64,000 bases of DNA. It comes from Octopus sinensis (lineage: Eukaryota). The notes beneath the pieces are model-generated. The model saw nothing but the letters and a program-made list of their open reading frames with translations, did no database searches and was not told the DNA's origin. Numbering within the stretch: position 1 is the stretch's first letter; each line of letters begins with the position of its first letter. The stretch covers positions 248,001 to 312,000 of the forward strand of contig NW_021832231.1 of NCBI RefSeq assembly GCF_006345805.1, read 5' to 3'. A program made the position numbers and the translations under genes. Below, piece after piece: positions 2,541 to 29,220 of the stretch.

Positions 2541-3106
2541 TAGGGTCAATTAATTCCCTTGGTTAAGCGCAACAGATCACAGTTTTTCTTTGGTTAGGTG
2601 ACCACTATCTCACTATGTAAGGTAGGTTAGTGACCTTTATTTGTGCCTTTTCGCAAGCCATGTTCTACTGGTGTAAACGTATTTCACTACATTAAGCAAA
2701 GATTTTAGAGCTTAATTTAGTCAGCAATGCCAATTTGGCAGAGATAGCGACAGATAATCGACTTTATTGCAAACTAAAAAGAAAGGAAGGCGACTCAGTC
2801 CCTCCTTGTAGTCCTCCAACTGACACTTTCAGTCGTGGACTCTGAAATAGCCAGACTATGACTCAGTGATGATAGACTGCGCGGTAAGGAAACCCTCGCC
2901 AAACGGAAATAGCCTGTCTAGATCACGCTTTATTGCATACGACGTCCAGCACGAAACTGAAAATTCTAGTTTACAACAAATATGAGCTCCTTTTCTGAGC
3001 TCCATTGACAATATTGATATATTGTCAATGAACGACTGATGATTAGTGAAAAATGCAGTATCTAATGATTTGTTGGAGGTTCTCGTAGATACTACAATAA
3101 ATAGTT

Positions 3107-3329
3107 CCCAAGACACTCCGCTTCCTTCGCTCGCTCGGTCGACGGATTTCAAGGACTAGTCACGATCCAAGAGAGTTTTCTTGGCTCCTGGAACGTCTGT
3201 CGATTGCTGTGATCCGAGGGAACAGCTTCGCCATTCGCGAGGCTGGTCGGGTGTCTCGTGAGGCCTTTAATTAACTTAGCTATCTTTAATTTCTTTCTTG
3301 CTTTCAGAACATAAATTGTTGTAAAAAAA
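3107..3329 (+). mobile_element. 5'-truncated 3' fragment of the CRE-clade retrotransposon, with A-rich tail and 11-bp TSD
   Basis: Near-identical reverse complement of ~3925-4152, with a handful of mismatches in the coding part. Ends GTAAAAAAAAA. Flanked by AATAAATAGTT at 3096-3106 and 3330-3340. Confidence 0.9.
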
Positions 3330-3911
3330 AATAAATAGTTAAGTTTGATCGGAAACACAAATGAGTAATTATTGAAGAAAGTTATAAGCTGGAAGATGTA
3401 TTCGTGCAATGTGCTTTCCACCGAATTATTATTGAACAACCTCACAAATTTTCTTATTTACAGATATCTTATGAATAATATTGAGTTAGCCAATTTTTGT
3501 TCAATTTATAAATGATTTATTTACGGATTTTATGGAAGTATCCAGTCATTACTCGAAATGCTTCAGACGTAAAATATTTATACAATCCGGATAAAAAAAA
3601 TTGTTGTCATTACATCTCGGAATATATGTGTAAAGTAATATATATTAACAAAAACAGTTAAAAAAATATATCAATTAAATGTCTAACCAATGAGTTATTC
3701 ACAATAAAATATGACCTATATTTAGAATGGTTCCACTTGTTCTACTTTTTGTTGGCTCTGTGATTCAAAACGAATGTGACCTAACAGAACGGTCTTCGGG
3801 AAATTTTAAAAAAATTGAATTACAAAACTGTACATTTAATACAGAACACGTTTCGACACATACAAAACACCTTATAATTCGAGATTACGTTGAATTTCCA
3901 CATAGAGAAAT

Positions 3912-6272
3912 TTTTTTTTTTTTTTTATTTTTTTTACATAAATTTAATTTATACAAACAAGACAAAAATTACAGATAGCTAAGTTAGTTAAAGGCCTCAC
4001 GAGACACCCGACCAGCCGCGCGAATGGCGAAGACGTTCCCTCGGATCACAGCAATCGACAGACGTTCCAGGAGCCAAGAAAACTCTCTTGGATCGTGACT
4101 AGTCCTTGAAATCCGTCGACCGAGCGAGCGAAGGAAGCGGAGTGTCTTGGGACCGAAGATCCCGGAGGACTCCAAGGCAATTGGAGTAAAGAGCAGCGAG
4201 TTGGACAGGTGGCCGTACTTGAGAATCTTTCGCTCCTCGGCCTGCCTGGAAGCGTGCCCAGGATTGGCGGCGGACAGCGCGAGATTTCCCAGCGAGAACG
4301 TGTCCGAGCAGGTAGAATCCCAAATAAGGGATTTCCCCTGCTCGTAGGGGAAGGTGGACATGCCGTCAGGGCGTTTGCCATCCCCTCTATCCAATCCAAC
4401 AGGTTCAAGGATAGACGGGATGCCTGCTGAGGCGAGGGCTCTCTGTACGACTGAGTTGAGTTCACTGTGACGGGGGGCACGACCGGCACTCCGCCGGCAA
4501 GCGAGGGGATGCAAACCGTACTCGTCAACAGTTCCCCCACAACGGCATTTGTGCGACTGGCAGATTTTCAGCCCGACACGGAGGGAGATTGCAATTCTTA
4601 GGCATTCCTTGTCCAACAGGTTCCCGATGGAAGGGAGAGGGAGAGCCTTTAACCAGACACCGCTGCTTTCACAGCGACCTGCACGGAGGCAAGCGACACG
4701 GTGTTGATTGGAGACAGGAAGCAGGCCTTCGAAGATTGCCTGACAAGAGATTTCGTCCCATTGGCGCTGTACAGATTGAGAGTTGGGCAGCTTCGAACCA
4801 AACCGAGCCTCCCACCGACCACGGGCTGCAGAGTAAACTTCAGACAATTTCCGTTCGGGGAGGTTTCTAAGAACGATGTCTGAGAGAGTACGAGAAGCGT
4901 GATGAGCGGATAGGAATGCCGGGAGGGCAAGATCGGAATAGGATCTCAAGCCAAGGCCACCCCAGCGCACAGGCAGGGATGCCTGAGTCCAGCCTGGATC
5001 GTCGAAAGCCAGATTGCAAAGAGAGCTCGTACCGAGCCTGAGGATATTGTCAAGGTCGGAAAGAAGGTCGCCTCTTTGAAAGCAGGGTGCACATCTTAGG
5101 GTGTAAAGGATCTTAGGGACGGAGAAGTGGTTTCGGAGGAGGAAAAAAGCCACATGAGGCTCGATGACTTTAAGCTTGTCGATCATTTTGGATAAGTGGG
5201 AAATTTTTCCAGCGAGTGAGCATTCGAGGGCAGAAGGCCCCATGGGGGCACCGAGAATCGTAAGATTTGATTTGTCCGTAATCCGGACGTCTGAGAGAAT
5301 GCCTCGGCACGTGGAAATTGAAGCAGTGAAGTCACTCGGATTTAAGGCAATGTTCACGATTTCGGATTTATTGGCGTTTATAGATAGGCCGATGTCCGAG
5401 AGGGAAGGGAGGATAGAACGAAGGTCGTCGAAAACAGCGTCGGGGGGACCGCAAATGGTTGCGTCATCCAGATACCATATGTTAACTGGGGATCGAACAG
5501 AGTGAGCGATACTGTTAACGCCCAAGGCAAAAAGGACAGGACCCAGGGGATCTCCCTGTTGGACCCCGGTGGCCGAAGAGATGGGAACATCGTCGAACAT
5601 GAGGATACTCGGAGAAGCGTATGAGAGATGTACAAGGGGATAAGCGAACGGAACCAGTTCGCGACAGCACTCCAGCAGGTGGTCACGTCTGATGGAGTTG
5701 AAAGCGTTTGAGACGTCTAGTTTGACCATGATAGCCGACTGGGAAGATTCGATGAGTTCACGGAGAGAATGAACGGCCGCTTCGCAGCCGTTTGGGACAC
5801 CGACCCCGAGTTGGGCGGGGAGAAACACTTGAGACAAAAAGGGGACAATTGCGTGGCACAGAAGTTTGGCAGAGAGCCTCCGAAAGATATTCCCAACGGC
5901 AATGGGTCTCACGCCGTTGTCCTTTTTCCCGAGGGCAGTAAGGTTGGCGGAAAAGAAAATATCACGAGCAAAATCGGGGAGGGAACCGGAGATGAAGCGG
6001 TTCCACAGGTTGGTAATTGAGCGTAGGAGTTTTCGACCAGCTTCGGCGGTAGTGGGAGACGTCAGGTCTTTCAGATGACCTGGTCTCAGACCATCTACAC
6101 CACCACTGCTTCCAGGTGAAAAGTCCCTCAGGGCTTTCAGTACAAGAGTTTCCGAGACAGCAAAAGGATTGAGAGCGAGGGTGTCAGGGGACGGCTGAGG
6201 CCTGAAGTCGTTTGGCTGAGGGGGATGTTTTTCCCTGAGGGAATTCAAACAGCAGGGGTCGTGGGCAAAAAG
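3912..6272 (-). mobile_element. CRE-clade non-LTR retrotransposon (RT plus restriction-like endonuclease), 5'-truncated, recent
   Basis: 12-bp TSD ACATAGAGAAAT at 3900-3911 and 6273-6284, and a poly(A) tail (T-run 3911-3935 on +). Much higher GC than the flanks. ORF uninterrupted. Confidence 0.95.
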
Positions 6273-6416
6273 ACATAGAGAAATATTTTCGAATTTACCC
6301 AACTTGATATCATTGTAATAACATTTCATTAATACCAGTGAGTGTCGAGGAAACTCGTTAACGAGAATACTAAACAACTCATTTGATAGAGTGATTAACT
6401 TATTCTGGATGTACAT
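3984..6416 (-). CDS. 810-aa RT-RLE ORF; the first ~48 aa derive from host flank
   Basis: RT motifs GVRPIAVG, LDVSNAFNSI, GVQQGDPLGP and WYLDD; CCHC-like CRCG..HPLAC; RLE motifs RHSELN, DGKRPDG, WDSTCSDT and ERKILKY. Confidence 0.93.
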   Translation of the reverse strand: MYIQNKLITLSNELFSILVNEFPRHSLVLMKCYYNDIKLGKFENISLCLFAHDPCCLNSLREKHPPQPNDFRPQPSPDTLALNPFAVSETLVLKALRDFSPGSSGGVDGLRPGHLKDLTSPTTAEAGRKLLRSITNLWNRFISGSLPDFARDIFFSANLTALGKKDNGVRPIAVGNIFRRLSAKLLCHAIVPFLSQVFLPAQLGVGVPNGCEAAVHSLRELIESSQSAIMVKLDVSNAFNSIRRDHLLECCRELVPFAYPLVHLSYASPSILMFDDVPISSATGVQQGDPLGPVLFALGVNSIAHSVRSPVNIWYLDDATICGPPDAVFDDLRSILPSLSDIGLSINANKSEIVNIALNPSDFTASISTCRGILSDVRITDKSNLTILGAPMGPSALECSLAGKISHLSKMIDKLKVIEPHVAFFLLRNHFSVPKILYTLRCAPCFQRGDLLSDLDNILRLGTSSLCNLAFDDPGWTQASLPVRWGGLGLRSYSDLALPAFLSAHHASRTLSDIVLRNLPERKLSEVYSAARGRWEARFGSKLPNSQSVQRQWDEISCQAIFEGLLPVSNQHRVACLRAGRCESSGVWLKALPLPSIGNLLDKECLRIAISLRVGLKICQSHKCRCGGTVDEYGLHPLACRRSAGRAPRHSELNSVVQRALASAGIPSILEPVGLDRGDGKRPDGMSTFPYEQGKSLIWDSTCSDTFSLGNLALSAANPGHASRQAEERKILKYGHLSNSLLFTPIALESSGIFGPKTLRFLRSLGRRISRTSHDPREFSWLLERLSIAVIRGNVFAIRAAGRVSREAFN

Positions 6417-6751
6417 TCAAATATTTTAAATCACTAGACAACTTTATTTATGCAGTAATCTTCGTTACATTGATGTAAATGCCTTTGCAAGTCTACACAC
6501 TTTAACAGAGCTGTAAAAATCCTATTTTTGCATTAAAGTTATATGCCAACAGATATCATTTTTCTACCACCAAAAATCATTAGTTCGCTCAAAATTTTGT
6601 ATTTTACATTACTGACTGTGTAGTATTACTGAGAGAACGAAAATGTGCATGTACACGCCTTCATCAGTGCAACCCACTATGTATACTTTATTATTCTCAT
6701 ATAAGGATTACGAAAGTGACTAATGAACTAGGTTGGCTGTCCATTGAATTA

Positions 6752-7400
6752 GACACCAAAAGTGTAGAAATTACTACAAATCAAGTTAATGGAGTAATAC
6801 TAATCACAGCACAAGCAGATGGTGTGTTTGTTTACTCACAATAGATTGCAACCGCTGCCGATACCCTAATCCCAGCAATCTTCTATGCACAGAAGATTTT
6901 CCTTAAATTAAAAATTTCGGTGTTCTAATTTACTAACCTGATTATTTGTTCCAATTTTTCTTTGTTCCACTTTTTAGCTCTATTAGTGTTAGATGCGCTA
7001 GTCACAAAGATAAATCATAATTTGAAAAAGATACATGTCGAGCACTAAGATTTGACCCTCTGTAAAAAGACGTTCCCGATTGTAATCTCCATTGGTATCT
7101 TAATCCTGAAATGGACAGCTATTCAGAATTCTCTTAATATGACTTTATTGACATTAATGTGATTGATTATTCATTCTAATATTTCTTTGCTTCTTGCTCT
7201 GTCTGACAAAAGCGTAAAAATAAATGCAAATCGAGCTCGAGAGGCAGCACTAATCACGGAGGATGCCTATGGTGTGTTAGTTTACTCACAATAGATTGCA
7301 ATCCCTGCCGATATCCCGCATCAAGCAATCTTCTATGCGGAAGGGATTGTGCTTAATTTAAATATTCGGATGTCATTAATTAACTAACCTAATTATTCAT
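6752..7400 (+). repeat. Diverged direct repeat (~6752-6952 and ~7204-7400) duplicating the last two exons of the LRR gene
   Basis: Both copies share the 23-nt intron GTGTGTT..CACAATAG and a Cys-rich terminal exon (DCNRCRYPNPSNLLC vs DCNPCRYPASSNLLC), and the sequence downstream of the stop is also similar. Confidence 0.8.
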
Positions 7401-15176: not shown

Positions 15177-16850
15177 TCAGACAAACTGACTGGCATACCT
15201 CATGGCGGGGACATTGGGGTGAGGCTATCAACATAATCAAACTACTCCCACCACAGCAGAGAAAGTAGAAAACTTAGGACTGAGATCATCGTGTGTGAGT
15301 GTAATATACGCCCCCAAATTGCCCACAGAGTCACTAACATTACCAGACCTACAAACCAATAGTTCGGGGCAGAAAATATTGTAATACACGCAGAGTCGTG
15401 CTCGATGTCGTACCCCTTCTCCTTCACCTCGTGACTCCGAATAATGTACCGCAACTGATTGGTCTCCAGAAACCGTTTAGTAACATCAGGACCGAACTGA
15501 ATCCCCACCCCTCGCTTGCTTTCCCCCACCCCCTCACACACCTGGGGGTCAGACCACAGAAGATCAGACATCAAACTCCCTAAAATAAACAACTCCTCCA
15601 CCAACCTTGATCAGGGGGCTGACAGACACGTTTTATGTTTTTAATATCCTCAATCGTCGTGTCAGTGGAAGACAGTCCTCCATGGACTACGAATACCTGT
15701 TGGTCGATGAGGTAGGCCAATGGGAGGTTGTTGAACAGATTAGTAAAACTCATCATCAAATCGGAGTTATATTTGTGCTTAACCTCCCCTTCGAATCCGT
15801 ACATTTGATTCATTGTCACTGTCTCGTGGTTGCCTGCACTCAGTCAGTCCATCAACCTCTGTTCAGGAAAAAACTGTTCGGGAATAACAAATTGTAGGAA
15901 ATCAGCAGGAGAATGCACTCCACTGAAAAAGACCCACGATCCACAAAATCTCCGTTAAAAAGCTATTTTTGATCAACCGATATTCTTACATAGGCATTGT
16001 CATCAGAAGGGGGTCCGTTCATTTCAAAAATGTGGAGAAGGTCGTAAAACTGGCCGTGAATGTCTCCACAAATAGTCAGTTTGGAATATTTGGACAAGTC
16101 AATTTCCCTCAGAGTGGGCAACCTTCTCTGCAATTCGGTCCCCAATTCGACCAACTATTTCCATTTAAATCACCTTCAAACCTGAAATGCATATTTTTTA
16201 TGTAAAAGTTTCTGATTTCTTAAACATTCAGTCAATTCTTCTACAAACTGGCCCGTCACTTGTCTCTGACTGAGAACTGGCCCGTCATATGTGTCCTCAA
16301 CCACTATAATTGTGATATATAAATAAACCAATCTTGTCAATGTCCTTTGTGGAAAAAGCTGAGTTCAAATCTATCGAATTGAGAGCCTTCAATGTCTTGT
16401 TTCGTGTGAGTGTTTTCTCACATTCGTTTCGTTTAGAAATAGCAAATTTATCTCCTTTGCAGACCTTAAGAACCTACAGACTGAAATCAGAAAAGATTAC
16501 GCTGTCAAAGTCTCTGAGAGCTTCTTTGAATTTTCCTAAGGCCATGTAAGCACATGCACGTCGGTAGTAGCCCTGCTAATTGGGGACATGGATAGACTTT
16601 AAGGAAGTTCTCGTTTTGTTGAATTGAGTTATTTGCGTCGGCCACAGCGGCTCCGTAGCATTCGAGTTTGAGGTGGGTTATGCTTCGATTGGCGTAGAGG
16701 ATGGCCAAATCCTCGCCAGGAGATGTGGCCTCGATTGCCTTGGTGTAGTATTCGAGAGCTTGGCTTAATTTATTATCTAAGATGTGCTTTCATTTATTGA
16801 CCTTTAAAAAATCCATTGGCGAGCCCACGTAGGCTAAGACCGTCTGACAT
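15177..16850 (-). CDS. PPP5C: Serine/threonine protein phosphatase 5 (TPR plus PPP catalytic domain)
   Basis: [32 protein letters not shown]; [11 protein letters not shown]; [10 protein letters not shown]; VVHGGL; DLLWSDP; [10 protein letters not shown]; IFSAPNY; C-terminus [15 protein letters not shown]. Confidence 0.97.
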
Positions 16851-16906: not shown

Positions 16907-18140
16907 CTAAAACAAATAGTAAAAATTATTTATCATCTTAACTCTACTGATTGAATCAAATGCTTTAGATATGTCAATTCTCATTATGTGATACTCCTCT
17001 TTATATTTTTGGCACAAAGCACACATCCATTTGTGGGTCCAAACAGCATCGGAATTTAATCTTCCAGAGACAAATCCAATTTGGCTAGGTCCTATAAATT
17101 CATGTAGTGGGCCTTTAATTCTCTCCAGAGCAATTAGTGATAAAATTTTACGCAGTGAGTTGAGTAGTATGATTGGTCTTAAGCTGTTTAGCTTTCCTTT
17201 TTTCTTCCCCGCTTTATGTAAGGGGATTAAATTTCCGATTCCAATGTTAATTATGGACTGTTCTTCAAAAGTTTTGTTCAAAATGTAAGTAATAAGTTTT
17301 TGAAGCTCTTCAGGAGCATATTTCATGAGCTCTGCATTAACATTATCTGGACCTGGAGCTTTTGAGTTGTTTGGTCTGGTCACAGATTTTTTAACTTTCG
17401 TTAAAGTAATTTTTTTTGATAGCTTTCTGGGCGCTCCATCAAAAGGATAAAGCGTTTCTTCGTTGTCAAAATTCGAAATATTTTTCAAAGTGGTCGGCTA
17501 TAGTGTCTGTGCGTGGTTCTTCCGAGTTCATCATGAACTGTTAGGTTTTCAGATTTCTTCTTTCGCGCTAGCATCTTTACAGATGCATACATTTGCGCTT
17601 CGTTTTTGTACTTTCCCACTTCATTTTCAAGGTTTTGTAGCCTTGTTTCGTAATTTTTCTGACATTTTTTCTTGATTTATCGCATGATTTTGTTTCTTTG
17701 GATTTTGAACTCATCTGCTTTCACTTGGTTGTGGGTGTTTATGTATTTGATACGTAGATCCTTTTGTAAATGAGAAAGATAATATATATCCGGGTCATGT
17801 ATTTCTTTGAAGGTTTTGGGAATTGTCCCAATCGTATGTTTAGCCACTGATTATATTTTGTTTGCGAGTTTATTCCATATACTTTCACCAGGTAAATTGA
17901 GATTGATCGATTCTATGGTTTGTGATATTTTAGTTGAGTAGTTATTTCTGTAGTCAGGATTGTTTCTTAAGAGTTCGATTGCAAATCTGGCTTCTCTGTG
18001 TCTGTTTTTGACTCTGTTAATCTAAAATCTTCTCTTTAGGAGAAGTTTGATTACCAATAGTTTATGATCACTTGATGTTATTTGAGAGCGATTTATTCTC
18101 TTTCAAATCAAAGTCGGATTATATAGCAGTTTAGGAGATT
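16907..18140 (-). mobile_element. RTE-like LINE fragment (end of endonuclease plus N-terminal half of RT), 3'-truncated
   Basis: SDHKLLV; KAPGPDNVNAELMKY; LRPIILLNSLRKILS; DISKAFDSI. Stops and frameshifts upstream. Confidence 0.85.
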
Positions 18141-20042: not shown

Positions 20043-20175
20043 TATCAGGATTCGACTCTCGGTACCGAAATTTGTATTATATTATTTGAAGAGTGGAATA
20101 TAATGATAAAACACAAAAATTGATTGTTAGTAACCGAAAAAATTAAAATTAGTTAAATAATTAGTAATATCCTGA

Positions 20176-21901
20176 TCAATAGGGGTTCAATTCAACAATG
20201 TAGTTAAAATTATTTTTGATACAGATTGCTTTCCCCTGACATTTAATAACAAGACATACCTGTACTATGTTATTGGAAACGGTCGGATAGACATTACAAG
20301 TATTGCCAGTAATGTTAGAAGATGTGAAATTATACGGACTTTTAGGAGCACATGCGGAAAGGTAATGGTCTGACGGACAAGTAACAGAAACGGAATTTGC
20401 TGTTCCAGTTTGTGCAACAAATGTAGCATTGCTATCAATTTGGAGTCCATAGGGTTCTAATATGATGATTTATCAATATACTTTCACATATGATTTTAAC
20501 ATTTTGAGTATTTGTTACATAGTAATAGCATTGATTATTGATGATGTACTGAGCGTTTAGGATCTGATTTGCATCCAAAATGCAGTTTAAAACACGTTCT
20601 CCAGCGGGACATGACAAAATAGATACACCGGAATTAATAACTTGATGCACGTAACTAATAACCGAGTGTGGAAACTCTTGGCAATAAGCAATAGTCTAAA
20701 ATATAACTCACATTCAAACCTTATCATTATGAGAAATGCATTGAGTTCCTCTGATAAAGCCAATAGCTTCTATCGAGTGGCACTCAACCAATTTAGTCCC
20801 GATAGGACAAGAGACATCGGCTGCCCCTCCTGTGGCACTGACTTGTCTTATTTTTGGAACAAACTATTAAAATAGCATATTTACTTATCAAAATTGCTTC
20901 GACGATACAGCCAACGCAAGGACTTATAAACAGGCATTTATTCGTTAGAATGTTCTTTATGCTCAAAAATGATAGGTTAGGAGGAAAACTAAAGTTCCTT
21001 ATAAACATGTAATACCTAGTTATGGTGCATCCTGTGACATAGTCAAGAGATGCTTGCTGAGAACTCGGAGTTACAACAACGGTTTTCAGTTCGTCGTCTT
21101 TTACACATTGGGCAATGGCCTTTTAATACAACAAAATATTGAACTTTAAATCCATTTTGAATTTCTGAAAAAGTGGCAATGCATTGGAAGCCAGTAACTC
21201 TAGTGGATAAGCACTTGTCGACTGAACTGCACTCACACGTCATTATTGTATATCCCGTGGGACAGACCACAGATGAGCTGTTTTTTCCATTGGAGGAGAT
21301 TGCTTGAAAGCCGGTAACATTCATATTAATTTCCTCTATTTTATATTCTAAACTAACAAACCAAGACAGGTTATTTCCGCGACAGTTCTACCATTGAAAT
21401 TTGGATTGGTGCGAGTAAAATCGCATTGGTTGTTTGTAATTTGTTTTGTATACAAATTTGATGCTATCCATCTGCAAAAATAGGCACATCCAATTCATAC
21501 GGGTTGTATATACGGCAGTCACTAATAACCGAATTTAGCGGACATGTCAATGTCATACTGTTAAACATATTTCTTCTTATCAAAATGGATTTGTATTTTG
21601 TCAAAGGGACGCATGTCCCCGTAATCTGAATAGAACATCTGATTTCGGGTTATTACCGTGTAATCTTGATTGTTAGCACCTTTTCCATAGCACATTGTTC
21701 CTTGCATGAATGTTCCGTCAGCCAGTCCAGTGAAATCACACTTTGAAAAAATCATAGCTGGTGGACAAAAAATTGTAGTCGCACGGTCGTTCCCAGAAAA
21801 TGTTGCCGAACTTATTTGTACTTCTCCAACGACTATAATTATAAAAATACATTTTGAATACACTGCTGTGTGATGTAAGATAGGAAAAGAATTAGAATCA
21901 T
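20176..21901 (-). CDS. Secreted protein with ~7 tandem four-Cys modules (resistin/PCSK9 C-terminal-like spacing)
   Basis: Signal-like MILILFLSYITQQ, then repeats of CP-x(7-8)-C-x(13-20)-C-x(7-18)-C such as VCPTGYTIMTC, SCPIGTKLVEC, SCPAGERVLNC and TCPSDHYLSAC. About 8 micro-introns; one junction near 20845-20885 is ambiguous. Confidence 0.75.
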
Positions 21902-26470: not shown

Positions 26471-27661
26471 TTTGTCTTAAAATTTTTTTTTTCGCCAAAA
26501 GGTAGACAAATCCTGGCTTTCAAACAAAATCTTGTAAGAATAATTATATTTAATTTCTATAAAAAATAATATAATAAAAAATGTCACAGGCTTGAAAGGA
26601 CCCCCAGGCTTGAAGGGACCTACCCTAATTAGATATTTCATATACTTAATAATAAAAATATCCAAAAGGAGCAACCGTACATACTTGATAGATAGATAAG
26701 GGTTTGTTTTGCAAAGGGATATCGGACATAAAAGAAATTAAGGGCCAGTAGTGGCCTTACACACAGGGTCGTCCGGAGCTATTTTCTTCTCTTCTCTAGG
26801 AACTTTTGGAATTGGGTTTCAACAAGCTCGCCAATCATAGGAAAGACTTTGCGCCAGCTCGGTATTTTCTCTCTTAGATTTACGCCGAAGGCCACCTTGA
26901 GCGCTAATCTCCTCGTTTTCTCCAGCAGTTTTATAATTCTTGCCTTGGAGGGGGACAAAATCCACCCTTCCAGCCCATACATCAGTACTGGAAGGATAGC
27001 TGCCTGGAAGATGAATAGCACAGTATCTGGGGGTAGGCGGAATTTGATCAGGCACTTGATCATTTGTGTGCACCGTTTTTTCCTTAGAATGATATCTTCC
27101 TCACACCTTCCGTTCTCGGAAAATTGGACTCCCAGGTACAGAAACGAGTAGGTCCTCCGGATGGATTCGATCGTATATGGTAACATTTTCGCAGTTCTTT
27201 TTGCCGACACTCTAGTGAGCGTGCATTTCTCGATTTACAGAGTCAAGTATTTCACTGCCATCCACTGTTGTATTTGTTCTAAGTAAATTTTTAGCTTCAT
27301 TTCTGACGTCGTCGGAAGGGCTGCTTCGTCCGTGATAATGACGCCATCTGCATAGATGAGCACATTCATTGAGATGAACACAGGTTTAGGGAAGTCTGCA
27401 ATATATACGTTGAATAGTAGCGGGCTTAGGAAGGGTTTCCGCATTAATGTCGCAATTCACAAGATTTTCCAGCAAAACTGAGTGACAGACACTGTCGAAA
27501 GCCTTCGATACATCCAAGCAGATAATACTGGTCGATAAGTCAGTCTCGTGCTTTAGATACTATCGAATTCAGTCGATAGATGCAGTCAGCACAGGACCGG
27601 CCCGGACGAAAACCCCACTGATCGTGGGAGAGCCAGTGATTCTTTTCTATGTGGCGTACTA

Positions 27662-29220
27662 CAGTACCGGTCATATGTTTTAGACATTCTGAAAAAATCC
27701 CAGTGTTTGATTTTTCTAAAGAAAAATCTTATTAAAAAATGCTTTTCATTAAGCATTATCCATTTTTTTTAGTTATTTATTTTTTCCCAATCTCATCGTC
27801 ACTGTATTTTCGACATCTTGATCTTTTTATAGATTTTGTCGAAACTGGCCCAGTCATATGTTTTAGACATTTACGATGCACATCCATAATCTGGAATTTT
27901 TAAAGTTAAAACGAGTTTTTATTAATTAAAACACAAGTTAGTATTTAGTTACATCTCCTTTTTTTTCGATATTACATCATGTATTCTATTTGGATCGACA
28001 AATACAAGTTTTGAATATAATCATCTCCCATCTTGTTCCATTCATCTTTTGCCATCTCCCATAGTTGCTTAACGTTCTGAGGGTTTCTATTTCTGATTTT
28101 GCTCTTTAAATAATGCCAGCAATTTTCTATTATGTTAAGATCTGGCGATTGTGCAGGCCAATTGTTTAAAATATTCACTCCTTTTTCAAGCAAATAATTT
28201 TTTGTAGACCGTGAAGTATGACATGATGCACCATCTTGTTGGAAAATAAAGTTATCATCATATATCTCAAAAAGCCCTTGTTCCAAGATTCGTTGATATT
28301 CTACGGAATCTACATTTCCTTCGCACAATATCAAGGCACTTTTTCCATCGTGTCTGATACCGCCCCAAACCATGATTGAAGGTGCGAATTTCTGAGTTTT
28401 CGTTGTGTAGTTCGAATTGAATCTATTTCCAGGAGGTCTCATTACGAATTCTCGTGCTTTCGAAATTAATTCGATGCGGCACTCGTCAGTAAAAATGACC
28501 TTATTCCAATCGAATGAAATGTTTCTAGTGCAGAATATTTTTCTCTTCTTGATATTATTAGTTGAAAGTCTAGGTTTTTGGCTGCTATTCTTACGAAAAG
28601 TTCATTTTTGCGTAAGATTCTTCGTACAGTTTCGACACTGACGTTTTCCGTAATATTTAGGTCTTTTCTGATTTCATTCGCTGTTTTTTTGGGAAAACGT
28701 CGAGACTCACGTACAAGATTCCTTTGAGCACGTGCCGAAAGAATACAATTTCTTCCAGATTTTGGTCTGTCGTAAAACCCATTTCCATCCAAATACCGTT
28801 GGTAAGTGTGATTTACGGCGCATCTGGATATTCCAAGTAAAATCGATATTTCCTGTACGGTATGACCATTTTCTCGCATAAAAACAATTCTATGACGCTG
28901 TTCAACAGAAAGTCGTGGCATACTGCTTTCAAATTAATTTAAAACACGTTTCCGATACGAAAAATAGAAAAAAAGTATAAATTTTATTGAAATATAATGA
29001 ATTAAATAAAATGTCTAAAACATATGACTGGGCCAATTTCGACAAAATCCTTAAACATATGAAGAAGTCGAAGATAAAGCGAAGATAAGATATGAAAATG
29101 ATAAATATATAAATAATATAGATAATACTTACTAAAAAACTTTTATTTTATTGGATTTTTCTTTAGAAAAATCAAACACTGGGATTTTTTCAGAATGTCT
29201 AAAACATATGACCGGTACTG
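27662..29220 (-). mobile_element. Tc1/mariner IR/DR transposon (DD35E), young
   Basis: TA TSD at 27660-27661 and 29221-29222; 67-bp identical terminal inverted repeats CAGTACCGGTCATATGTTTTAGACATT...; inner repeats at ~27832-27872 and ~29009-29049. Confidence 0.97.
27938..28921 (-). CDS. Tc1-family transposase with three apparent indels in homopolymer runs
   Basis: Paired-like HTH MPRLSVEQRHRIV..SGR; IFTDE, MVWGG, QQDGASCH, WPAQSPDLNIIE (35 residues between D and E); restored C-terminus KKGDVTKY*. Confidence 0.9.

Follow-up and report, generated by a model that had tools for sequence, protein, structure and literature searches.

Our analysis of a 64,000-nucleotide (nt) stretch of DNA deposited as Octopus sinensis (contig NW_021832231.1, positions 248,001 to 312,000; the whole stretch is hereafter called the window and numbered from its first letter) revealed an intact protein-coding gene on the minus strand between positions 20176 and 21901. 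The gene encodes seven tandem cysteine-containing modules, one of them degenerate, and sequence-profile comparisons support a distant relationship of these modules to the resistin head and to the modules of the C-terminal domain (CHRD) of PCSK9. We estimate, at a probability of roughly 0.8, that this unannotated gene belongs to a dicyemid mesozoan and gives rise to a secreted, soluble array of seven resistin/PCSK9-CHRD-like modules that serves as a multivalent binder.

Gene structure and tandem modules

Translation of the minus strand between positions 20100 and 22000 in three frames revealed open segments carrying C-P-x(7-8)-C motifs and, between them, short stretches that contain stops and shift the frame. 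Joining of these segments at GT-AG borders removed 10 introns and united 11 exons into one open reading frame (ORF) of 481 amino acids (aa; 480 aa in an alternative splice model), which runs from an ATG at 21901-21899 to a TGA at 20178-20176 and thus starts and ends exactly at the limits proposed in an initial annotation of this DNA. From 5′ to 3′, the introns measure 29, 31, 29, 26, 25, 27, 40 or 43, 24, 25, and 24 nt, and their GC content ranges from 14 to 38% (mean of about 25%) compared with 38.4% in the exons. A TATA-like box, TATATATATTAAAA, which may represent a promoter element, precedes the start codon. Collectively, the single ORF across 10 GT-AG introns, the contrast in GC content between exons and introns, and the TATA-like box support the gene model. 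Plus-strand ORFs over the gene showed no Pfam match, an Rfam scan of the whole 64-kb window returned nothing, and neither tblastn nor a motif scan detected a paralogue elsewhere in the window. Since NCBI called one gene in the 23 kb around the neighboring CFAP299 gene and the protein collections hold no match to the product, the gene is effectively unannotated.

The encoded protein begins with the hydrophobic sequence MILILFLSYITQQ (Kyte-Doolittle 9-residue mean of 2.3 to 2.8 over residues 1 to 11), presumably a signal peptide, which is followed by seven units of 54 to 72 aa and a 14-aa tail. It contains 30 cysteines, four per unit and two extra ones in unit 3, as well as six N-x-S/T sites. 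No anchor was recognized in the spliced protein; the tail IKNNFNYIVELNPY is not hydrophobic, which argues against a membrane anchor or a GPI-type end. Residues 262 to 280 are moderately hydrophobic (Kyte-Doolittle value of 1.58) in one splice model (model A). The features of the gene are listed below; shuffle counts refer to the repeat test and bit scores to the hidden Markov model (HMM) of foreign modules, both of which are described further on.

20176-21901 (−): whole gene, 11 exons and 10 introns, about 481 codons; corresponds to bases 268176-269901 of VCDQ01002408.1 in GCA_006345805.1
21921-21934 (−): TATA-like box TATATATATTAAAA, 20-33 nt 5′ of the ATG, recognized from sequence
21862-21901 (−): exon 1, followed by a phase-1 intron of 29 nt (21861-21833)
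21863-21901 (−): presumed signal peptide MILILFLSYITQQ, by hydrophobicity; most of exon 1
21611-21862 (−): module 1, aa 14-77; 9/1000 shuffles reach the score; 11.2 bits
21656-21626 (−): module 1 intron, 31 nt, phase 0, four codons before the last Cys
21366-21610 (−): module 2, aa 78-149; 0/1000 shuffles
21500-21472 (−): module 2 internal intron, 29 nt, phase 2, after Cys2
21361-21336 (−): intron after module 2, 26 nt, phase 1, second codon past the last Cys
21105-21365 (−): module 3, aa 150-219, best preserved; 0/1000 shuffles; 42.4 bits over HMM positions 7-63
21144-21120 (−): module 3 intron, 25 nt, phase 0, four codons before the last Cys
20907-21104 (−): module 4, aa 220-276, degenerate; 226/1000 shuffles, not significant; −1.5 bits
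21015-20989 (−): module 4 intron, 27 nt, in frame, phase 2, at nearly the same place as the module 2 intron
20842-20903 (−): module 4/5 splice junction with two options, 20903-20864 (40 nt, GTCGAA..AATAG) or 20884-20842 (43 nt, GTAAAT..ACAAG)
20681-20906 (−): module 5, aa 277-330 in the 40-nt model; 0/1000 shuffles; 14.6 bits
20719-20696 (−): module 5 intron, 24 nt, phase 0, four codons before the last Cys
20486-20680 (−): module 6, aa 331-395, wholly in exon 9; 0/1000 shuffles; modeled with AlphaFold 2 and searched with Foldseek
20481-20457 (−): intron after module 6, 25 nt, phase 1, second codon past the last Cys
20221-20485 (−): module 7, aa 396-467; 0/1000 shuffles; 34.6 bits over HMM positions 7-63
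20259-20236 (−): module 7 probable intron, 24 nt, phase 0, four codons before the last Cys
20176-20220 (−): C-terminal tail IKNNFNYIVELNPY and TGA, non-hydrophobic

The repeat was examined by a leave-one-out approach in which each unit, together with 1000 shuffled versions of it, was scored with an HMM of the other six. For units 2, 3, 5, 6, and 7, the real score was never attained by a shuffle; 9 shuffles attained it for unit 1 and 226 for unit 4. The array is composed of six real modules and one degenerate module, module 4, in which the first Cys-Pro is gone and the spacing has changed, and this agrees with the initial annotation, which had described about seven tandem modules with a degenerate fourth. 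The measured period of 54 to 72 aa, on the other hand, replaces the module length of 45 to 60 aa given there, and the accompanying motif, (S/T/V)-C-P-x-G-x(2)-L, needs to be relaxed: its core, C-P-x(7-8)-C...C...C, is constant, but the glycine at +3 occurs in three modules only and the leucine is merely a hydrophobic position.

Sister modules share 14 to 24% identity, and pairwise z-scores between the units gave no signal for which module duplicates which, the similarity being too eroded. A signal of duplication was found in the intron positions only. A phase-0 intron interrupts each of modules 1, 3, 5, and 7 at exactly four codons ahead of the final Cys. After modules 2 and 6, the second codon past the last Cys is split by a phase-1 intron, and both module 2 and module 4 contain a phase-2 intron four or five codons past Cys2. 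This alternation suggests that the array grew when a block of several modules, in the simplest case two, was duplicated in tandem.

A listing of all frame-keeping GT-AG pairs bore out the ambiguity of the splice junction that had been flagged at about 20845-20885, between modules 4 and 5. Both credible introns at 20842-20903 keep the frame, and each pairs one good splice site with one poor splice site. If a GTAAAT..AATAG intron of 21 nt were used, the protein would end after module 4. Two other introns, 21015-20989 (27 nt) and 20259-20236 (24 nt), have a length divisible by three and are free of stops, and their removal is therefore not provable from sequence alone. Both sit at the positions and in the phases of unambiguous introns in sister modules. 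Furthermore, in each of the 40 foreign homologues a gap of 8 columns coincides exactly with VCLVIKCQ, the peptide that would result from reading through intron 20259-20236, and the AlphaFold confidence (predicted local distance difference test, pLDDT) dips over the same peptide; this intron is probably real. Retention of introns 20989-21015 and 20236-20259 would add just 9 and 8 residues, respectively, and in a genome with introns of 24 to 30 nt, harmless retention or alternative forms could arise in this way.

Relationship to the PCSK9 C-terminal modules and resistin

A profile (A2) was derived from an alignment of the seven module segments, each taken as an uninterrupted exon translation, and searched against 1.84 billion protein representatives. 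The search yielded 28 matches at an E value of ≤1 × 10−3, among them P0002 (3.9 × 10−14), P0003 (5.2 × 10−12), and P0004 (4.8 × 10−11). Inspection showed that, apart from four bacterial proteins that are considered below, all of the remaining 24 matches are uncharacterised eukaryotic proteins that have one module in common, with the consensus ..S....DDA.S...CP.G..LTGC.C.S....CDGA...GN.C.A.N..GG.GV.A.ARC. Nine of the ten matches that were scanned contained Pfam PCSK9_C3 and/or PCSK9_C1 (E values of 7 × 10−34 to 7 × 10−5), and two of them also showed a weak Resistin match (E value of 0.02). In these foreign relatives the module is accompanied by PAN, WSC, PA14, Laminin_G_3, EGF, and M12 metallopeptidase domains.

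The alignment of the six good units of the window with 40 foreign modules by hhalign resulted in a probability of 98.1% and an E value of 1 × 10−13 over 57 columns, with the four cysteines in register and with the hydrophobic strand positions included in the match. When the foreign modules alone were turned into a profile, its search against PDB retrieved PCSK9 and nothing else (E value of 3 × 10−17). The reciprocal search, in which this profile, free of any window sequence, was run against 1589 six-frame ORF segments of the window, gave six matches, all of them exons of this gene (E values of 5 × 10−10 to 8 × 10−3); the next match had an E value of 0.78. On the spliced protein, the foreign profile scored 109 bits, compared with a maximum of 10.6 bits in 2000 shuffles, and modules 3 and 7 matched it end to end with 42 and 35 bits. 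A word-indexed search of 5.8 billion clusters with a mixed alignment (A6) returned two short PCSK9_C1 fragments only.

The four-cysteine framework of the family, C(P)-x8-C...C...C in a module of about 60 to 75 aa, is found in six of the seven modules, and module 4 lacks Cys1. The extra cysteine pair typical of the family (C-E-C-SSVDK-C) is present in module 3 only; the other modules have lost both of these cysteines together, as expected for a disulfide, and the family members P0002 and P0004 likewise lack the third pair. Collectively, these profile comparisons support the view that the modules are remotely homologous to the resistin head and the PCSK9 C-terminal module, the resemblance that the initial annotation had suspected from cysteine spacing.

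Structures were predicted for single exons only, using the family alignment A6. The AlphaFold 2 model of exon 9, which comprises the whole of module 6 preceded by the last strand of module 5, contained six strands and had a pLDDT of 71.6 and a predicted template modeling score (pTM) of 0.57. In a Foldseek search of PDB with the model of module 6, ranks 1 to 3 were occupied by resistin (1rfx and 1rgx) and RELM-beta (1rh7) at probabilities of 0.93 to 0.97; many PCSK9 chains came next, with probabilities up to 0.98, TM scores of 0.62 to 0.66, and root-mean-square deviations of 2.5 to 3.1 over 62 to 65 columns. The model of exon 10, which includes module 7, the probably intron-encoded 8 aa, and the tail, reached a pLDDT of 72.9. 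Resistin, RELM-beta, and PCSK9 thus ranked at the top for module 6, with weak E values, but were not retrieved with module 7. The models are consistent with a resistin/PCSK9 fold, if weakly so, and every module may adopt a six-stranded beta-sandwich.

Source of the scaffold and alternative explanations

In addition to the gene described here, the window contains genes for PP5, COX6A (weak match, E value of 0.002), uridine kinase, CFAP299, RPL26, an L-type lectin, and a HECT ligase, as well as an ETF-beta-like segment recognized by eye. A CFAP299 exon is 100% identical to the [quoted passage not shown] encoded on VCDQ01002408.1, and the locus of that protein matches 29675-52672 of the window with 100% identity, which places the window at bases 248001-312000 of this record. 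Myxozoans are not known to have cilia. The neighboring PP5-type phosphatase gene is interrupted by a GT-AG intron of 26 nt (15567-15592, minus strand, gttggtgg...attttag, after ...QPPDQ), and ultra-short introns are therefore a property of this genome and not just of the gene under study. The scaffold combines introns of 24 to 31 nt with a GC content of about 34% in the window. For Dicyema japonicum, which lives in the renal sac of its host O. sinensis, a mean intron length of 38 bp, a GC content of 36.7%, and a LINE-rich repeat fraction of 49% were reported (PMC6736024), and animal introns of less than 30 bp in length were reported just for dicyemids and myxobolid cnidarians (PMC13644364). 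Scaffold VCDQ01002408.1 is most probably dicyemid mesozoan DNA that was assembled into, and annotated as, the genome of the host Octopus sinensis, and a parasite source of the gene is plausible. It should be noted that our literature search found no report of dicyemid DNA in the assembly of O. sinensis.

That the gene is a true gene of the octopus host would agree with the deposition of the scaffold as Octopus sinensis and with the name that NCBI gave to the neighboring CFAP299. We nevertheless regard it as very improbable: the introns of 24 to 31 nt in this gene and in PP5 belong to a size class known among animals from dicyemids and myxobolids only (PMC13644364), the GC content and the repeat load fit D. 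japonicum, a parasite of O. sinensis (PMC6736024), and the CFAP299 product shows 53% identity to the protein of the cephalopod Argonauta versus 54 to 61% to vertebrate, cnidarian, and hemichordate proteins. A ciliate origin, which the 25-nt introns had suggested, was rejected, as the frame is open in the standard code, TAA and TAG act as stops in the introns, and the neighboring genes are animal-like.

Mobile elements are also present in the window. An intact reverse-transcriptase ORF of 810 aa (3984-6416, minus strand; RVT_1 E value of 4 × 10−18) lies in a 2-kb block with a GC content of 54%, compared with 31 to 44% elsewhere; it could belong to a retroelement that is young or of foreign origin, and an exact-sequence look-up found no identical product on record. 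A Tc1/mariner transposase (helix-turn-helix and DDE_3, split over two ORFs) is located at 27972-28921 (minus strand), a second reverse-transcriptase fragment at 16907-17488 (minus strand), and a possible third one, identified by eye, at about 26780-27460 (minus strand). These transposase and reverse-transcriptase elements fit the high repeat load reported for Dicyema.

Several results weigh against the interpretation of this dicyemid gene as the source of a secreted resistin/PCSK9-CHRD-like array. The spliced protein matched no Pfam family at an E value of ≤10, PF18459, PF18463, and PF06954 included. Searches of PDB by phmmer with the protein and by hmmsearch with the module profile gave chance matches only (a cytochrome subunit and a capsid protein, both with an E value of 0.77), and hhalign against two human PCSK9 modules (M1 and M3) alone was not significant (probability of 1.3%). 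As the direct Pfam and PDB searches were negative, the homology link is transitive and runs through the foreign intermediates, which were themselves chosen with the window profile. Moreover, 4 of the 28 A2 matches (P0001, P0014, P0025, and P0026), the top one among them, are bacterial proteins in which short repeats containing T-C-P are numerous. They look like spurious sums of partial matches, and bacterial repeat proteins reached E values down to 1.5 × 10−17 against the 60-position module profile, which implies that summed E values for repeat proteins are inflated in such searches. As to structure, every Foldseek E value for module 6 was weak (0.05 to 2), the exon 10 model (module 7) retrieved generic beta-sandwiches and neither resistin nor PCSK9, and the AlphaFold 2 models are not independent of the family, since the input alignment held PCSK9_C-like homologues. 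Given that the structural evidence is weak and tied to the alignment, it is the sequence-profile evidence that carries the conclusion on homology. Regarding the gene itself, one junction (20842-20903) has two possible introns, module 4 has decayed, and the presumed signal peptide lacks a basic n-region. With the spliced protein as query, the word-indexed search of the 5.8 billion clusters yielded nothing at an E value of ≤1, neither an identical nor a nearly identical protein, and therefore provided no evidence of expression. Finally, the function is assigned purely by analogy.

Some of these points would also suit a decaying or silent pseudogene, in which the frame through ten introns survives because the death of the gene was recent. 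Module 4 has degenerated, neither solution for the junction at 20842-20903 is clean, the intron of 40 or 43 nt at this junction is an outlier among introns of 24 to 31 nt, no matching protein or transcript-derived ORF occurs in the 5.8-billion-cluster collection, and NCBI annotated nothing at the locus. The last of these is, however, what can be expected of an octopus-trained pipeline that copes poorly with 25-nt introns and called one gene in the 23 kb around CFAP299. All eleven exons are open, all introns obey the GT-AG rule, and a TATA box is present; the 30 cysteines are even in number and placed in the family framework, and modules 3 and 7 still reach 42 and 35 bits with the foreign profile, so that we consider a pseudogene unlikely. 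We attach hardly any weight to the explanation that the units belong to another extracellular cysteine repeat (EGF, VWC, TSP1, furin-like, CCP, or chitin-binding) and resemble PCSK9 and resistin through convergent spacing. Short cysteine-rich motifs such as C-P-x-G do recur across many families, the direct Pfam, PDB, and human PCSK9 comparisons were negative, and the module 7 model matched Ig-like and other beta-sandwiches. Yet no Pfam family of any kind was hit at an E value of ≤10, and, besides the four bacterial proteins, all matches in the search of 1.84 billion proteins represent one module type, which had been named beforehand. The match extends over about 57 columns that include hydrophobic strand positions, the reciprocal search was specific to this gene, and resistin and PCSK9 were the top structural matches for module 6.

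Possible function and comparison with known systems

If the gene is read as a dicyemid gene for a resistin/PCSK9-CHRD-like array, its product, with a mass of about 50 kDa and six potential N-glycosylation sites, would be soluble and secreted. Each module would form a small six-stranded beta-sandwich held by two disulfides (three in module 3), with module 4 decayed. The modules might be packed into two PCSK9-like trimers arranged around module 4 or might extend as a rod. The array could then work outside the cell as a multivalent binder or recognition factor that gains avidity from repetition, and its likely setting would be the surface of the parasite or the interface with the host renal sac. 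The resistin head and the PCSK9 CHRD are non-enzymatic and act by binding partners. We propose a binding role on account of this property and of the foreign relatives, which join the module to adhesion and carbohydrate-binding domains; a role at the parasite-host interface would be a reasonable guess. The roles suggested initially, those of an adhesin, a lectin, or a host-modulating effector, reach further than the evidence.

The findings extend the resistin/PCSK9-CHRD module, studied so far only in vertebrate resistin/RELM and PCSK9, to a much-reduced parasitic animal. They also illustrate how far sequences can drift while a four-cysteine framework is kept, given that sister modules of 14 to 24% identity are missed by Pfam. 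Protease-free arrays are common in marine eukaryotes and uncharacterised, and they bear on the origin of resistin and of the PCSK9 CHRD. For dicyemid biology, the gene provides a candidate secreted or host-interface protein missed by current annotation, and a scaffold that looks like parasite DNA under the name of the host matters to users of the Octopus sinensis assembly. A broader proposal, which we put forward tentatively and regard as doubtful, is that stand-alone resistin/PCSK9-CHRD-like arrays constitute an old, widespread, and unstudied class of extracellular binders in protists, hemichordates, nemerteans, and now a dicyemid, of which vertebrate resistin and CHRD would be late offshoots, and that the dicyemid copy, with its two-disulfide core and seven modules, is exposed on the surface or secreted and binds octopus renal epithelium or host molecules.

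Among known systems, the PCSK9 CHRD (M1 to M3; PCSK9_C1, PF18459, and PCSK9_C3, PF18463) resembles the window protein in its tandem modules of about 65 to 75 aa, in the C-x(8)-C...C...C pattern with hydrophobic strands in register, and in the six-stranded beta-sandwich of each module, which is predicted here for module 6. Unlike PCSK9, the window protein has neither a subtilisin-like catalytic domain nor a prodomain. Module 1 starts at residue 14, directly after the presumed signal peptide, and neither Peptidase_S8 nor any other Pfam domain was detected in the spliced protein at an E value of ≤10, which bears out the earlier statement that a protease domain is absent. The window protein further differs in having seven modules instead of the three that form a pseudo-threefold unit in PCSK9 and two disulfides instead of three in all but one module, it lacks the terminal Cys-Cys doublet and the His-rich surface, and it is missed by the Pfam models.

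The resistin/RELM head (PF06954; 1rfx, 1rgx, and 1rh7) shares with the window protein the sequence S/T-C-P-x-G-x-x-h-x-x-C, to which C...C is added in module 3. It is likewise a small disulfide-rich beta-sandwich, as predicted for module 6, and is secreted, as the window protein probably is. Resistin, however, carries one head per chain and an N-terminal helical tail through which coiled-coil trimers and disulfide-linked hexamers are formed, whereas the window protein has seven heads and no helical tail; no segment lies between its presumed signal peptide and module 1, and it thus has no N-terminal helix of the resistin type. Its modules are also lower in cysteine, and a direct sequence match to resistin is missing.

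The closest relatives found are stand-alone PCSK9_C-like arrays of marine eukaryotes, represented by Saccoglossus kowalevskii XP_006818615.2, Tubulanus polymorphus XP_074659567.1, an MMETSP transcript (P0004/P0029), and the Tara or other metagenome proteins P0002, P0003, P0010, and P0017. For PCSK9_C-like proteins of organisms other than vertebrates, our literature search returned no paper. P0017, a protein of 1251 aa with many PCSK9_C-like modules of alternating subtypes, derives from an ORF free of introns at 3001-6756 of a 277-kb contig (ERZ25073835, ctg56889), where it adjoins a Kringle-domain gene on this large metagenomic eukaryote contig. Like the window protein, the stand-alone arrays consist of a signal peptide and two to six or more modules without a protease, and some of them (P0002 and P0004) have two disulfides per module. 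They differ in that their own modules are 40 to 60% identical to one another, compared with 14 to 24% in the window protein, in that most keep the D-D-A...C-D-G-A...G-V-x-A-x-A-x-C signature that the window protein has lost, and in that many are fused to PAN, WSC, PA14, EGF, TSP1, or metalloprotease domains. The high repeat number and the lack of a protease, which had initially been taken as unusual, are therefore not peculiar to this gene: stand-alone arrays of 3, 6, or more modules are already present in databases, and the window protein represents a new, unusually divergent member of a known family.

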